In this document: piece by piece, positions 2,647 through 8,500 of the stretch
Numbering within the stretch: position 1 is the stretch's first letter
How the letters are laid out: the number at the start of each line of letters is the position of its first letter
Made by a program: the position numbers and the translations under genes
Notes under the pieces: model-generated
The model's input: the letters and a program-made list of their open reading frames with translations, nothing else
Told to the model about the DNA's origin: nothing
Databases searched by the model: none
Source: Obrimoposthia wandeli
Taxonomy: Eukaryota
Reading direction: 5' to 3'
DNA: 64,000 nt
NCBI GenBank assembly: GCA_977020255.1
Contig: CDROCS010000122.1
Span: 496,001-560,000 of the forward strand

Positions 2647-2692
2647 TCTACTATATGATTAGCACTATTATTTCAGATAATTGTGCATACTC

Positions 2693-4096
2693 ATGTTTAA
2701 AAAAATCTTATCACTGTCACTGCTTGTTATGAGTCTGCCTTCACTGGCTGCGTTCAATCCCCAAGCTGCCATCAATAAACTGCCTAACGGACACGATTTA
2801 GCGTTAATGATCGCTGATCCTGCAACCAATAAGGTACTTTATTCCCAGCGTACAGAACAATTACAAGCCCCAGCCAGTACACAAAAAATGATCACCGCAC
2901 TTGCGGCTAAACTCTATCTTGATGACAACTACCGTTTTAATACTGATCTGGAGGCGAATGCGAATGATGTGATTATTCGCTTTAATGGCGACCCAACACT
3001 ATCCCGTACTGAGCTAACATCACTGCTAAGAACACTCAAAAAGAATGGCCTTTCAACGATCAAAGGTAACTTATACCTAAATGGTAATGCTTTCTCTGGC
3101 TATGAGCGCGCAGCTGGCTGGCCATGGGATATTCTAGGCGTTTGCTATAGTGCGCCATCAAGCAGCATTACACTTGAACACAACTGTGTACAGGGCGCTT
3201 TATACAGTAATAAAGCTATCGGTCAGCAAACACGTATTAATATTCCCAGTCACCAGCCGATTAAAGCGACAACCAATGCGCTTATCGTGACAAAAGAGCA
3301 GCAAAAACAACAACACTGCGAATTAGAATTAGTTGCAGATTCTAGTAACAATTATCAACTTAGTGGGTGTTTACCACAAAGCCAGAAGCCACTGCCGTTA
3401 AACTTTGCCGTGCAAAATACCGAAGCTTATACCGCAGCAGTGATTCAGCAGGAATTAAAACGTTCGGGGATCCAGCTAAAAGGCACAATTCTTCGTAATG
3501 ACAATATAAAAGGTAAACGCATTGCACGCCATCAATCGGCACCGCTGTCGGAACTGATCGATATTATGCTGAAGAAATCAGACAACTTAATCGCTGATAA
3601 CTTAACCAAAACATTAGGGCGTGAATACTTTAAACAAGCAGGCACATTCAACAATGGCGTGGCAGCAATCAAAGCCATTTTACAGGAACAAGCCAATATC
3701 GACTTAACCGATACTGTTATGGTCGATGGTTCAGGCTTATCACGTAATAACCGCATAAAAGCAAGCTCACTGATGCAAGTGATCACTTACCTCTATAACA
3801 ACCCTTCATTGGGTTTACTGAAAAATATGCCAGTATCAGGAGAAAGTGGCACGTTACTTTACCGACAAAGTCTTCGCCAAGCGCCACTGAAGGGCAATAT
3901 AGTTGCAAAAAGTGGGTCTTTATATGGCAGTTACAATCTCGCAGGCATGATTAATACTCAATCAGGTAAAACATTGTTGTTTGTCCAATTGGTAAATAAC
4001 TATTTTCCACCCGATAAAACGAATGATAAGCCCACGACTCCCCCTATCACTGAATTTGAAAAAGCCTTATACCTCGGTATTTATAACGAATATTAA
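2693..4096 (+). CDS. dacB: D-alanyl-D-alanine carboxypeptidase/endopeptidase PBP4
   Basis: PASTQK (SxxK), KSDN (SxN), AKSGSL (KTG-like) motifs; DGSGLSR; start could be TTG at 2681. Confidence 0.93.
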   Translation: MFKKILSLSLLVMSLPSLAAFNPQAAINKLPNGHDLALMIADPATNKVLYSQRTEQLQAPASTQKMITALAAKLYLDDNYRFNTDLEANANDVIIRFNGDPTLSRTELTSLLRTLKKNGLSTIKGNLYLNGNAFSGYERAAGWPWDILGVCYSAPSSSITLEHNCVQGALYSNKAIGQQTRINIPSHQPIKATTNALIVTKEQQKQQHCELELVADSSNNYQLSGCLPQSQKPLPLNFAVQNTEAYTAAVIQQELKRSGIQLKGTILRNDNIKGKRIARHQSAPLSELIDIMLKKSDNLIADNLTKTLGREYFKQAGTFNNGVAAIKAILQEQANIDLTDTVMVDGSGLSRNNRIKASSLMQVITYLYNNPSLGLLKNMPVSGESGTLLYRQSLRQAPLKGNIVAKSGSLYGSYNLAGMINTQSGKTLLFVQLVNNYFPPDKTNDKPTTPPITEFEKALYLGIYNEY

Positions 4097-4143
4097 GCAA
4101 CCCGAGATAACCTATCGCTTCAGTAACCTACGACTAAAACAAC

Positions 4144-4176
4144 AAAGCCCTAACGTATCGAATACGTTAGGGCTTT
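4144..4176. terminator. bidirectional terminator dacB/mgtE
   Basis: AAAGCCCTAACGTAT-cga-ATACGTTAGGGCTTT perfect inverted repeat. Confidence 0.85.
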
Positions 4177-4198
4177 CGTTATGATTTATAGCTTAAGA

Positions 4199-5047
4199 CT
4201 ACGATAATCCAAGCATCCAATTGACGGTGGTAAAATAAATCATCATACCGGTGATATCGACCACAGAGGCCAATACAGGGCTAACCAATACCGCCGGATC
4301 TAACCGGCATGCCCGTGCCACCATTGGCAGCACACCACCGACACTCGTTGATAATACAACCTGAAGTGATATAGCCATGCCAATTGCCATTGCTATATCT
4401 TCTAGGTTCATACCTGCTGGCAGCGAGGTGCTATCGCTGAACATCATCACACGCCCCATAATCACCGCGGCTAATACGCTAGCCATGATGATTGATACGC
4501 GAAATTCTTTCCACAATACGAGTAGCCAGTCTTTACACCGTATCTCTTCCATCGCGAGCGCCCTTACCACCAAGGTTGCTGCTTGCGATCCGGTATTACC
4601 ACCAGCAGCCGCAATAACGGGCATATAGATGGCGAGTAATACTAATTGGCTTAATGTATCTTCGTAATGAGAGATGATTAAACCGGAAACAATACCAAGT
4701 AAAGCTAACCCTACAATCCAACCAATACGCTCACGTACATGGCTCATTACACTGTTTTTCAGATAATGACCTGCGGGCTCTGCTTCAGAGCACAGTAAAC
4801 CAAGCCCACTCGCTAAGTGACGCATACGTACTTCTTCACCCAGCTCATCCAATCGATCAAGCAGGTTTTGGACATGACGTAGCGGGCACTCATGGAGCAC
4901 AGCAATAGCTTCTGTTATTGGCATCACAACCAATAATTTTGCTTGCTCATCAAAGGTATATTTTAAAAATGCATTTCGTGCAGCCAGAATATCATTCTGA
5001 CCATAGTTTTCCGTTACAGCATCTGCTGCATAGTTCATTACCGCCAT
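4199..5047 (-). CDS. mgtE: short MgtE-family magnesium transporter (membrane domain, no CBS pair)
   Basis: YMPVIAAAGGNTGSQAATLVVRAL and DPAVLVSPVLASVVDITG motifs; GGAG SD before ATG at 5047; only about 85 aa of N-terminal cytosolic sequence. Confidence 0.88.
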   Translation of the reverse strand: MAVMNYAADAVTENYGQNDILAARNAFLKYTFDEQAKLLVVMPITEAIAVLHECPLRHVQNLLDRLDELGEEVRMRHLASGLGLLCSEAEPAGHYLKNSVMSHVRERIGWIVGLALLGIVSGLIISHYEDTLSQLVLLAIYMPVIAAAGGNTGSQAATLVVRALAMEEIRCKDWLLVLWKEFRVSIIMASVLAAVIMGRVMMFSDSTSLPAGMNLEDIAMAIGMAISLQVVLSTSVGGVLPMVARACRLDPAVLVSPVLASVVDITGMMIYFTTVNWMLGLS

Positions 5048-5325
5048 GGCGAATCTCCCGATTGGCATAGTTACAGTAACGACCATCAAAATTTTGCCAC
5101 GATACAAGGTAAACGTGCTTTTTACTCTTTGCTGTAACACTAAATAATAGCGCTACAAACAACAGCAAAATGCCTGTCATTTACTACTTATTGACATAAT
5201 TCAACATTGAGAACTAAGGAAGAAAATCGAGGAAGTATTGTCAGATTGGGTATAAAGCAAATATACAAATAAGGACAAGCTATTCCGAACCCTGGCAGGA
5301 TCGGAAACATAGGAGACCGATACCA

Positions 5326-5379
5326 TTAAAGGGTTTGATTTTCCACCTTCATACTCGGAGGATGGTCGGTATCGTTCAT
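5326..5379 (-). CDS. putative Pro-Pro leader peptide of mgtE, MNDTDHPPSMKVENQTL (17 aa)
   Basis: GGAG SD 6 nt before ATG, CCT-CCG codons, TAA stop; lies downstream of a candidate promoter in the mgtE leader; too short for the ORF track. Confidence 0.65.
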   Translation of the reverse strand: MNDTDHPPSMKVENQTL

Positions 5380-5419
5380 TGAAATCTCCAAAAATTTGCC
5401 GCTTGTTGCGACGTCGGTA

Positions 5420-5447
5420 ATTGTACGCAATTCAATTCTGAGTTCAA
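5420..5447 (-). promoter_or_regulatory. candidate sigma-70 promoter for leader peptide + mgtE
   Basis: TTGAAC-N16-TACAAT. Confidence 0.5.
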
Positions 5448-5519
5448 GATCTATATGAGTTAAAAGTGATACAAATTGTGATGGTTACCACGTCTACCTG
5501 CCTAATTCGTGAATATAAA

Positions 5520-5542
5520 AAACCCACCAAAAGGTGGGTTTC
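5520..5542 (-). terminator. carB terminator
   Basis: AAACCCACC-tttt-GGTGGGTTTTT on minus strand. Confidence 0.75.
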
Positions 5543-5576
5543 TAAAATATAAGCAATATACCGTTAAGATTGCATC

Positions 5577-8500
5577 TTAATAGTGATGATTATCCTTAAT
5601 ACGAGCGTGAAGCTCTTGCAAAGATGTAACATGGCCACGGTCATCGGCAGTGTGAGCCATACACGTTGCAAATGCAGCATTTAGCGTAGTGGTGTAATTT
5701 ACCTTTTCAGCCAATGCGCTACGACGAAGTACTTTAGAGTCTTCAATCGCTTGGCGACCTTCTGCCGTATTCACAATGTAGGAGTATTCATTATTCTTGA
5801 TGCGGTCAAGAATATGAGGACGCCCTTCGTGTACCTTGTTCACTAGACGTGGGTTAATCCCCGCTTCACCTAGAATCACAGCGGTACCGTGTGTGGCATC
5901 TAGCTGGTAACCAAGCTTCACAAGCTTAGAGGCTAAATCGACAACACGTTGCTTGTCATTATTACGTACTGATAATAGTGCGCGACCACCATCTTCATAC
6001 TCTTTACCACAACCAAGCTCTGCTTTAGCAAATGCTTCTGCAAATGTGTCACCAAAGCCCATCACCTCACCTGTTGAGCGCATTTCAGGGCCTAACAGTG
6101 GGTCAACACCTGGGAATTTGTTAAATGGCAGAACCACTTCTTTCACAGAGTAGTAAGGAGGGATAATCTCTTTAGTGAAGCCTTGAGATTCAAGAGATTG
6201 ACCAGCCATTACACGTGCTGCAATTTTCGCTAGCGGTGCACCTGTTGCTTTCGAAACAAATGGGACAGTACGCGCAGCACGAGGGTTAACTTCAATTAAG
6301 TAAACTTCGTTATCTTTCACTGCGAACTGGGTGTTCATCAAACCACGAACACCTAGCTCAAATGCTAGCTTTTTCACTTGCTCACGCATCACATCTTGGA
6401 TTTCTTTGCTTAGCGTGTAAGCAGGCAATGAACATGCTGAATCACCCGAGTGAACACCCGCTTGTTCAATGTGTTCCATGATGCCGCCGATAACAACCTG
6501 TTCACCATCACAAATGGCATCAACATCGACTTCAACTGCATCATCAAGGAAACGGTCAAGCAATACCGGTGATTCGTTAGAAACACTTACCGCTTCATTA
6601 AAGTAACGGCGAAGGTCTTGCTCGTCATAGACGATTTCCATCGCACGACCACCCAATACATACGATGGACGCACAACTAATGGGAAACCAATAATACGTG
6701 ATTTCTCAATCGCCAATTCCATTGTTGTAACAGTGGCATTCTCTGGCTGTAATAGACCTAAACGGTCAACCGCTTGCTGGAAGCGTTCACGGTCTTCTGC
6801 ACGGTCGATAGCATCAGGGCTAGTACCTATAATCGGCACACCAGCGGCTTCAAGTTCACGAGCCAGTTTAAGTGGTGTTTGACCACCGTATTGAACAATA
6901 ACGCCTTTTGGCTTTTCAACACGCACAATAGCCAGCACATCTTCTAGTGTTACTGGTTCAAAGTACAATCGATCTGATGTGTCGAAATCTGTTGAAACCG
7001 TTTCAGGGTTACAGTTAACCATGATTGTTTCATAACCATCTTCACGTAATGCTAATGATGCATGTACACAACAGTAATCAAATTCAATACCTTGACCGAT
7101 ACGGTTAGGACCACCGCCCAGAATCATGATCTTATCATTATCTGTTGGCTGTGCTTCACACTCTTCATCATATGTAGAGTACATGTAAGCCGTATCAGAA
7201 GAGAATTCAGCCGCACAAGTATCAACGCGCTTATAAACGGGATGAATGTCATGCTGGTAACGTAATTTACGAATTTCACTCTGTGCAACACCGAGCAATT
7301 TCGCTAAACGTTCATCAGAGAAACCTTTACGCTTTAGCTTACGTAGTTCAACGGCATTTAGACCCGCAAAACCGTTATCTTTAACTTTTTGCTCATCTTT
7401 AACGATGTCTTCTATTTGCACCAAGAACCAACGGTCAACATTCGTTAAGTTGTGTACACCATCAACCGACATACCTGAACGGAATGCATCGGCAATGTAC
7501 CAAATACGCTCTGCGCCTGGCTCTTTCAGTTCATGACGAATCTTGCTCATGGCATTAGGTTCGTCTAGATCAACCATTTCATCAAAGCCTGTTGCGCCAA
7601 CTTCTAAGCCACGCAATGCTTTCTGTAATGATTCCTGCTGATTACGACCAATCGCCATCACTTCACCCACAGATTTCATCTGTGTTGTTAGACGATCATT
7701 AGCACCAGCAAACTTTTCAAAGTTAAAGCGAGGGATCTTCGTTACAACATAATCGATAGTCGGTTCAAATGATGCTGGTGTCGCACCACCCGTGATGTCG
7801 TTCATTAATTCATCAAGGGTGTAACCAATCGCCAGTTTCGCTGCAATTTTTGCAATTGGGAAACCTGTCGCTTTAGAAGCAAGCGCAGATGAGCGCGATA
7901 CGCGTGGGTTCATTTCGATGATAACCATACGGCCATCTTTCGGGTTGATACCAAACTGGACGTTTGAACCGCCCGTTTCAACACCGATTTCACGCAATAC
8001 TGCTAGCGATGCATTACGCATCAACTGATATTCTTTATCTGTTAGTGTTTGTGCTGGTGCAACCGTGATTGAGTCACCGGTGTGAACACCCATCGCATCA
8101 AAGTTTTCAATCGCACATACGATGATACAGTTGTCGTTTTTGTCACGAACAACTTCCATCTCGTATTCTTTCCAACCAATTAACGATTCATCGATAAGCA
8201 ATTCGTTAGTCGGTGAAAGATCTAAACCACGAGAACAGATTTCTTCAAATTCTTCTTTGTTATAAGCGATACCACCGCCCGTACCACCCATCGTAAACGA
8301 TGGACGAATGATACAAGGGAAACCCACCATATCGAGAACTTTGTAAGCTTCTTCCATGGTTTTCGCTGTATCGGCATTAGGACATTCTAAACCTATAGAT
8401 TTCATTGCCTTGTCGAAACGTGAACGGTTTTCAGCTTTATCAATTGCATCAGCTGTTGCACCAATCATTTCAACATTGAATTCTTTTAGTACACCGCGCG

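Follow-up and report, generated by a model that had tools for sequence, protein, structure and literature searches.

A conserved Pro-Pro leader ORF in the structured leader of a short, CBS-less mgtE gene: a candidate translation-sensing attenuator in Vibrionaceae

Control by leader peptides is established for the Mg2+ transporters MgtA/MgtB and CorA in enterobacteria, while mgtE genes are known under M-box riboswitches and the MgtE protein under its own CBS sensor. In this work we analyzed a stretch of 64,000 nucleotides (hereinafter the window, i.e., positions 496,001 to 560,000 of contig CDROCS010000122.1, assembly GCA_977020255.1, deposited as Obrimoposthia wandeli), in which a short mgtE gene whose product lacks the CBS domain is preceded by a long leader embedding a very short open reading frame (ORF) with two consecutive proline codons. 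On the basis of comparative sequence analysis, we are highly confident that the leader ORF is conserved and translated and has RNA partners that covary, and we consider it rather likely that the leader works as a translation-sensing attenuator, an analog, though no homolog, of those of mgtL/mgtA and corL/corA. The whole locus lies on the minus strand, and its features, given in the numbering of the window, follow one another in the order carB, terminator, promoter-like site, hairpin P0, GGAGA, leader ORF, post-stop segment, hairpin P2, pyrimidine-rich tract, element X, and mgtE. The leader is about 370 nt long, including about 130 nt of variable sequence between the pyrimidine-rich tract and X.

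In the case of mgtA and corA of Salmonella and E. coli, translation of the upstream ORF (uORF) is inversely related to the expression of the transporter, and the stems formed in the ON state sequester pyrimidine-rich Rho utilization (rut) sites (PMC11552253). The same paper summarizes the finding that stalling at Pro codons induces mgtA in both organisms. Moreover, nascent chains rich in Asp, Glu, and Pro at the N terminus, such as the one carrying the EPDP of MgtL, abort translation, and they do so more at low Mg2+ (bioRxiv 10.1101/2021.02.02.429294). The leader described here resembles that of mgtA in having a short ORF containing Pro and acidic codons near the 5' end of a long Mg2+-transporter leader, candidate alternative RNA pairings that would be set by the position of the ribosome (modeled here, and without covariation for the pairings P4 and P5 beyond the single case given below), and a tract rich in pyrimidines on which Rho could act. 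The two leaders, however, share no homology of sequence or structure: the peptide is MN-x-TDHPPS here and MEPDPTPLP in MgtL, a dissimilarity already remarked in the initial annotation of the window; the Pro-Pro codons are consecutive here; the gene downstream encodes an MgtE-family channel (PF01769) and not the P-type ATPase MgtA; the helices P1 and P3 are arranged in a pseudoknot-like manner, in place of the stem-loops A/B versus C; and no PhoPQ context is known here. As far as the polarity proposed below is concerned, corL/corA appears to be the best analog, in that the control of corA is purely leader-based, with uORF translation inverse to expression and rut sites sequestered by the ON-state stems (PMC11552253), although the transporter family, the peptide, and the RNA are different and corL contains few Pro or acidic residues.

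Other known systems share single traits with this leader. Consecutive Pro codons in the mgtP/mgtM ORFs of the mgtCBR leader of Salmonella link the status of elongation factor P (EF-P) and Pro-tRNA to the expression of an Mg2+ transporter (PMC3641672); consecutive proline codons in a leader ORF are thus common to the two systems, whereas mgtP/mgtM consists of tandem ORFs with hairpin attenuators in an unrelated leader with other downstream genes. The M-box (ykoK), the usual regulator of mgtE, likewise acts in the 5' leader of mgtE-family genes and responds to Mg2+, but it is an RNA sensor of the metabolite type and lacks a leader peptide, and no match to it was found here at E values up to 10. 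SecM, VemP, and the RAPP-type ApdA/ApdP share with this leader a conserved peptide motif that closes with Pro-Pro and the remodeling of the downstream mRNA by a ribosome that has paused; those peptides are longer, sense protein export, and unmask an adjacent ribosome-binding site (RBS), whereas here the 8-9 conserved residues stand at the extreme N terminus and the start presumed to be regulated is 200-380 nt away. Finally, unlike the hairpin attenuators of trp, his, and pheA, this leader has no terminator hairpin with a U-tract and no supported 2:3 antiterminator. A scan of positions 4000-6000 with Rfam 15 at E values up to 10 retrieved no Mg-related family, M-box included, and four related loci gave no hits at the Rfam gathering score; full-text literature searches returned no description of the leader and no paper containing the string TDHPPS. 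With neither an Rfam family nor a paper found, in agreement with what the initial annotation had stated, we regard the leader as previously undescribed.

The leader ORF and its conservation

The ORF, MNDTDHPPSMKVENQTL, consists of 17 codons plus a stop and extends from an ATG at 5379 to a TAA at 5326, downstream of the Shine-Dalgarno (SD) sequence GGAGA (5389-5385), which is also the 5' strand (a) of helix P1; the initial annotation had placed the GGAG, the ATG, and the ORF (5379-5326) at these positions, where we recovered all of them. The codons GAC CAT CCT CCG AGT (5367-5353), specifying D-H-P-P-S, represent the presumed site of ribosome pausing or abortion, and this codon pattern has no other match in the 64-kb window. 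The comparison was carried out on 80 loci harboring relatives of the short MgtE, to which two Endozoicomonadaceae loci were added later, and the main tables cover 81 loci. Alignment of the regions upstream of short mgtE orthologs, which had been suggested together with the initial annotation, revealed an ORF of the type M-x-x-x-D-[HQY]-P-P-S upstream of the gene in 83/83 loci, with D-x-P-P unchanged in all 83 and with covarying stems. It is present in practically every species of Vibrio and Photobacterium. Each locus possesses a single ORF of this type, located 202-377 nt upstream of mgtE, and the genera concerned are Photobacterium, Vibrio (including V. cholerae, V. harveyi, and V. splendidus), Enterovibrio, Grimontia, Parasalinivibrio, Endozoicomonas, Spongorhabdus, and one Shewanella. 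Vibrio proteins are the nearest relatives of the Shewanella copy, which points to gene and leader having been transferred as a unit; a search with the Shewanella protein as the query, made to widen the taxonomic reach, gave Vibrio hits once more, in keeping with a horizontal acquisition.

The consensus N terminus is M-N-x-[TI]-D-H-P-P-S, the most frequent beginnings of the peptide being MNNTDHPPS (31 loci), MNDTDHPPS (16 loci), and MNNIDHPPS (13 loci), accompanied by minor variants such as MNVIDHPPS, MDTDQPPS, MKTTDYPPS, VNDTDQPPS, METDQPPS, and others. The peptide is hydrophilic, and conservation concerns the 8-9 N-terminal residues, the C-terminal part being variable. The signals of translation are maintained as well. 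The start codon is ATG in 79 of the 81 tabulated loci and GTG in two, the GGAG ends exactly 6 nt before it in 79/81, and the stop codon is TAA in 62 loci, TAG in 13, and TGA in six, having been lost only once. The length of the ORF varies between 11 and 19 codons except in the one species with a mutated stop; in this species, Grimontia sedimenti, the stop reads TAT for TAA and the ORF is extended to 68 codons, a natural stop-loss variant which might be informative on the mechanism.

Variability was also scored along nucleotides 19-27 of the ORF (CC.CC.AGT) in 79 leaders, Endozoicomonas being omitted for reasons of register. Variation is confined almost entirely to the wobble bases of the two Pro codons, nucleotide 21 being T or C and nucleotide 24 any of the four bases; each of the remaining seven positions keeps the same base in 78-79 of the 79. 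In Endozoicomonadaceae, in turn, the amino-acid motif survives nucleotide changes, for instance GAC to GAT and CAT to CAA. Since the start codon, the SD spacing, the interchange of stop codons, and the wobble variation at the Pro codons are not explained by any of the helices proposed below, the ORF looks translated, and on this comparative evidence we consider it almost certain that it is. The idea that the leader is an RNA-only element (a riboswitch or a protein-binding leader) and that the ORF is a by-product of structure without functional translation draws on the fact that the SD and codons 2-7 and 10-14 fall within conserved helices, so that nucleotide conservation alone is no proof of translation; the signals just listed and the persistence of the amino-acid motif in Endozoicomonadaceae speak against it, and we judge it very improbable.

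Two further observations concern the codons around the motif. The Ser codon following Pro-Pro (5353-5355) is AGT in 82/83 loci, while AGC and TCN never occur; no conserved partner for pairing with it came to light, and its role may be that of the codon in the A site of a paused ribosome. In Vibrio aestivus, a 1-nt deletion after the Pro-Pro codons makes this leader depart from the others at nucleotides 25-26 and yields MNNTDHPPVAG followed by a stop; the frame of the Ser9 codon and of the normal 3' half is lost in this species, yet the nucleotides of strand c (see below) are retained.

Covarying helices, pyrimidine-rich tract, and element X

An all-genus RNAalifold analysis recovered only an ACCG/CGGT core, the registers of the helices differing between genera; for this reason, clade-specific alignments were used together with duplex tests in which cognate strands were compared with cross-clade ones. 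In the 45 distinct Vibrio leaders, 90.2% of the cells of the proposed helices are paired, a share that drops to 40-53% upon sliding the partners, and 16 pairs show double-sided changes, with 86 double-sided cells versus 23.7 in shuffles, a value that none of 500 shuffles reached. The corresponding values in Photobacterium are 88.8% against 37-52%, with seven double-sided pairs (a number reached by two of 500 shuffles). The helices involved begin with P0, a 5'-terminal hairpin GTCGC/GCGGC followed by a U-run (5412-5398), all five pairs of which covary within Vibrio (96.9% paired; 97% in Photobacterium).

Helix P1 is formed by the segment right after the stop codon, GGTATCG-G-TCTCC (5324-5312; strand b'a'), which pairs with codons 2-4 of the ORF (CGATACC, 5374-5368) and with its SD (5389-5385). 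The initial annotation had noticed this complementarity in the window, and it is both kept and covarying in the relatives. Indeed, the duplex energy is -18.9 kcal/mol for cognate strands and -15.9 kcal/mol for cross-clade ones (p 6.5e-14), the b:b' strands have 95-96% of the cells paired in Vibrio and Photobacterium, and compensatory changes include GAT/ATCG versus AAT/ATTG, GAGAT/ATCTC versus GAGAC/GTCTC, and AAACCG/CGGTTT in E. montiporae. The P1 of Spongorhabdus is almost uninterrupted, with about 20 bp that take in codons 2-4, the GUG start, and the SD.

Helix P3 connects the 3' half of the ORF, AAGG-T-GGAAAATC (strand c, 5349-5337), with GATTTTCT-T-CCTT (strand c', 5228-5216) at the end of the pyrimidine-rich tract, the partner c' being located 80-150 nt downstream of the 3' half of the ORF. 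The cognate energy is -15.1 kcal/mol and the cross-clade one -12.2 kcal/mol (p 1e-18). The sequences of the two strands differ strongly between clades while their complementarity is kept, and this extends to other families: c and c' read GGAAAATC and GATTTTCT in the window, GGGAGAAAAA and TTTTTCTCC in most Vibrio, ATGGAGAAGAAT and ATTCTTTTCCA in the V. splendidus group, GGGAGGC or GGGAAGC and GCCTCCC or GCTTCCC in Enterovibrio, AGTAAGGAGTGA and TCACTTCTTACT in Endozoicomonas, and GGGAAGCGAA and TTTGCTTCCC in Spongorhabdus. Since c sits in the loop of P1 and c' lies beyond P1 and P2, so that P1 and P3 cross, the folded leader appears pseudoknot-like.

Hairpin P2, TTCCGA...TCGGAA (5306-5283), also present in the initial annotation, stands alone; it is found in all the leaders with a mean energy of -11 kcal/mol and covaries in both Vibrio and Photobacterium. 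The annotation had further suggested that its 3' arm can pair alternatively with TCCGA across the Pro-Pro-Ser codons. These 5 bp do exist in the window and in the clades having CCG as second Pro codon, but the pairing is not conserved: it is lost without compensation in two leaders (L015 and L016), it is absent from most Vibrio, and it has no covariation support. P2 was also considered as an intrinsic terminator and discarded, as it was not flagged by the scan, has no contiguous U-tract, and has a tail that is only moderately U-rich. The minimum free energy (MFE) and centroid folds of the window leader contain P0, P3, and P5 (-105.8 kcal/mol, z -2.48), and the MFE fold also shows the segment after the stop paired to the P2 5' arm. 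A trp-like 2:3 antiterminator made of these two segments was rejected, the energy of cognate strands (-5.05 kcal/mol) being close to the cross-clade one (-4.57 kcal/mol; p 0.13, z -0.77).

The tract extending from 5282 to 5216 and ending in c' had been called C-rich and rut-like in the initial annotation, which had placed it at 5235-5209. It is indeed G-poor and constant in position (40-55 nt after the ORF stop in 81 leaders), and it is better termed pyrimidine-rich, T being more abundant than C: the best 60-nt stretch of the window has C 0.25, G 0.07, and T 0.48, and the means over 81 leaders are C 0.29, G 0.10, and T 0.40. If left single-stranded, the tract would be a plausible Rho entry site.

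An unbiased column-pair scan of all the leaders revealed a further element, X (GATGGTCGTTAC, 5087-5076), which is near-invariant in Vibrionaceae and located just upstream of the mgtE RBS. X is complementary to two different segments, the two pairings overlapping by 3 nt. In P4 its first 8 nt face nucleotides 12-19 of the ORF (CGACCATC, codons 4-7, 5368-5361), and in P5 its last 7-8 nt face codons 2-5 of mgtE (GGTAATGA, 5042-5035). This complementarity would explain why the wobble bases of ORF codons 4-6 are frozen. In an ensemble model of 77 Vibrionaceae leaders with P1 engaged, the mean pair probability is 0.76 for P4 and 0.43 for P5; when a 31-nt ribosome footprint is centered on Pro-Pro, the modeled P4 falls from 0.76 to 0, P5 rises from 0.43 to 0.66, and the unpaired probability of the mgtE start goes from 0.44 to 0.35, being lower in 76/77 leaders. 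Taken as a whole, the core element looks like the ORF with P1, P2, P3, and the pyrimidine-rich tract, and X with P4/P5 looks like a layer specific to Vibrionaceae.

A possible ribosome-occupancy switch and its alternatives

We suggest that translation of the ORF probably controls mgtE, with the ORF serving as a sensor of ribosome occupancy and its RNA as a pairing hub for downstream segments. The 5' strand of each helix with comparative support lies in the coding sequence of the ORF or in the region where its translation begins, and a ribosome on the ORF must therefore unfold the leader. With Pro-Pro in the P and A sites, it would cover approximately nucleotides 7-37, that is, strand b of P1, the P4 strand, and the first half of c, and a ribosome held by D-x-P-P-S would then break the P1, P3, and P4 contacts. 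P1 being unable to close, the SD of the ORF would remain open; the pyrimidine-rich tract would be left single-stranded and accessible to Rho; and X would be freed to form P5 with codons 2-5 of mgtE, shutting its start (mgtE OFF). Conversely, if the ribosome fails or departs early, P1 would close the ORF, P3 would hold the end of the tract, and P4 would keep X off the mgtE start (mgtE ON). Early loss of the ribosome could derive from the Mg2+-sensitive abortion at N-terminal Asp/Glu/Pro peptides, as for MgtL. The parts of this scheme do not deserve the same confidence: by modeling and by analogy with corL/corA and mgtL/mgtA we lean slightly toward an occupied ORF corresponding to mgtE OFF, whereas Mg2+ as the input signal, suggested by the analogous systems, is quite possible but tentative, and the participation of Rho, suggested by the same analogy, is somewhat more doubtful. 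A sensitivity to EF-P, too, is suggested by this analogy and is equally tentative. As for the initial annotation, its idea of an attenuator retains the conserved Pro-Pro ORF in a structured leader, while the switch it had proposed is replaced by P1/P3 and, in Vibrionaceae, by X.

Several points weigh against this scheme. The modeled change in accessibility (0.44 to 0.35) is small; an earlier and cruder model gave an even smaller effect, and an irrelevant control block also lowered the accessibility in 55/81 leaders. P4 and P5 are no energetic outliers relative to shuffles (z -1.3 and -0.9), their covariation amounts to one compensatory pair in P. kishitanii-type leaders, and X with P4/P5 is not evident in Spongorhabdus or E. 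montiporae (Endozoicomonadaceae). Counting Asp, Glu, and Pro among residues 2-10, 58 of the 81 loci have three and 23, including the window, have four, the value being four in Photobacterium and Endozoicomonas and three in most Vibrio; the latter therefore fall below the criterion of "more than three" for N termini prone to intrinsic ribosome destabilization. Furthermore, a ribosome stalled, and not lost, at Pro-Pro at low Mg2+ would turn the gene OFF, which is the wrong direction for an importer, and such an outcome of stalling would be opposite to that of the classic mgtL model.

The main rival is the reverse polarity, according to which, following the classic mgtL logic, a stall at Pro-Pro (caused by low Mg2+, proline, or EF-P) would block P1, favor a conformation permitting read-through into mgtE or its translation, and so switch mgtE ON, and completed translation would switch it OFF. 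It has a precedent in the induction of mgtA by stalling at Pro codons (PMC11552253), it would be homeostatically sensible for an Mg2+ importer, and the MFE fold of the window, in which the P2 5' arm is bound by the post-stop segment, shows the kind of alternative that it needs. This 2:3-type pairing, however, shows no advantage of cognate over cross-clade strands (p 0.13; z -0.77), P2 is devoid of a canonical terminator U-tract, all the helices supported by covariation require a ribosome-free ORF, and the modeled footprint at Pro-Pro closes the mgtE start instead of opening it; we therefore consider the reverse polarity distinctly unlikely. A different question is the nature of the signal, since the leader might sense translation capacity, the supply of proline, the status of EF-P, or another cation, and the MgtE paralog may be no Mg2+ importer at all. 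Pro-Pro is a generic pause dependent on EF-P and Pro-tRNA, which would suit such signals, as would a protein deprived of the Mg2+-sensing CBS module. The same holds for the separate canonical mgtE of V. cholerae, VCA0818 (PMC10127744). On the other side, the membrane domain is a clear homolog of MgtE, aligned over the whole membrane domain of the Thermus protein, and two other classes of Mg2+ transporters rely on the same uORF principle, so that a signal other than Mg2+ seems unlikely to us.

It could finally be imagined that the 5' part is an independent gene for a small RNA (sRNA) or a small protein acting in trans (a dual-function transcript), given that the region from P0 to P2 with its U-rich stretch could yield a stable species of about 130 nt. 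The peptide, however, is hydrophilic, only 11-19 residues long, and variable in its C-terminal half; the element is always found directly upstream of the short mgtE, even after its transfer to Shewanella; and P3, plus X in Vibrionaceae, physically ties it to the mgtE leader. A role in trans thus appears extremely improbable. Returning to the occupancy switch, a more elaborate version of it would see the ORF as a three-part RNA hub constituting a bistable toggle that took over Mg2+ sensing from the lost CBS domain across Vibrionaceae. Pausing at Pro-Pro would hold the SD of the ORF open, and the loss of the ribosome would let P1 snap shut, locking the ON fold; the toggle would work through the Mg2+-dependent destabilization of the ribosome at the N-terminal D-x-P-P, V. 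cholerae and V. parahaemolyticus included. In this complete form we consider it unlikely.

If the attenuator interpretation is true, a third major class of Mg2+ transporters would be under the control of proline-containing leader ORFs. That the leader belongs to another family of bacteria, and has neither peptide nor RNA fold in common with the known cases, would argue for the convergent evolution of the ribosome as an Mg2+ sensor. In addition, the leader offers a well-constrained model, with a conserved peptide of 8-9 residues, RNA partners known to the nucleotide, natural compensatory variants, and tractable, fast-growing Vibrio hosts.

The short MgtE, the promoter, and the neighboring genes

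The mgtE gene has an SD sequence GGGAGA (5059-5054) and an ATG at 5047, and its coding sequence (5047-4199) specifies 282 aa, against 473 aa of Thermus MgtE. The protein consists of the MgtE membrane domain only (PF01769, E 1.3e-30) and aligns with residues 307-469 of the Thermus protein (E 2.6e-25), that is, with its whole membrane domain. No match to the CBS domain was found in the 282 aa, in agreement with the initial annotation, and the MgtE_N domain gave only an E value of 0.13, below the cut-off. Since V. cholerae holds a separate canonical mgtE, VCA0818 (PMC10127744), the short MgtE can be viewed as a paralog; it carries no protein-level Mg2+ sensor module, in the place of which stands a putative leader device at the mRNA level. 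The window is sequence of Photobacterium profundum SS9, and its short MgtE is 100% identical to the entry of that strain. The start was fixed at 5047 because most orthologs are 281-284 aa long, while some database proteins are longer (302 aa for the SS9 entry and 314 aa for many V. parahaemolyticus entries). The N-terminal extensions covering 5047-5107 are probably mis-annotated, because the longer start crosses X and the conserved GGGAGA RBS; the SS9 entry is probably about 20 codons too long, and the mgtE start codons are likely to have been annotated too far upstream in many records, SS9 included.

As regards the 5' end of the leader, a sigma-70-like promoter is present at 5447-5420, with a -35 box TTGAAC (5447-5442), a -10 box TACAAT (5425-5420), and a spacer of 16 nt (9/12 matches). 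This site had been proposed as the candidate promoter (5420-5447); the distance between the -10-like hexamer and the 5' hairpin downstream of it is constant across the 81 aligned leaders, but promoter-like matches are no more frequent in the window than in shuffles. Upstream of it lie carB, ending at 5577, and a strong intrinsic terminator (about 5542-5519). The upstream gene is carB in only 30/80 loci and the leader still stays with mgtE in the others, which implies that it travels with mgtE. In V. cholerae, the 3' untranslated region (UTR) of carAB gives the Hfq-dependent autoregulatory sRNA CarZ (Vcr084) (PMC7398697); we considered Vcr084/CarZ as a possible mgtE leader and rejected it, since it is a carAB 3'-UTR sRNA. 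The 3' UTR of carB in the window (5515-5576), which has the intrinsic terminator at its end, may be the Photobacterium counterpart of CarZ, and it matched no significant Rfam family.

A second ORF in the leader (5180-4992, 62 aa, starting with MTGILLLF) was discarded, being reduced to 13 or 4 aa or absent in close relatives; it overlaps a conserved hairpin specific to Photobacterium (about 5155-5180, of the GACAGGC...GCTGTC type) in the variable middle part of the leader. Downstream of mgtE, a convergent ORF of 471 aa on the plus strand (2681-4096) is kept in 76/80 loci; it may, at a guess, encode a DacB/PBP4-type carboxypeptidase, and between it and mgtE there is a bidirectional terminator-like hairpin (4144-4176).

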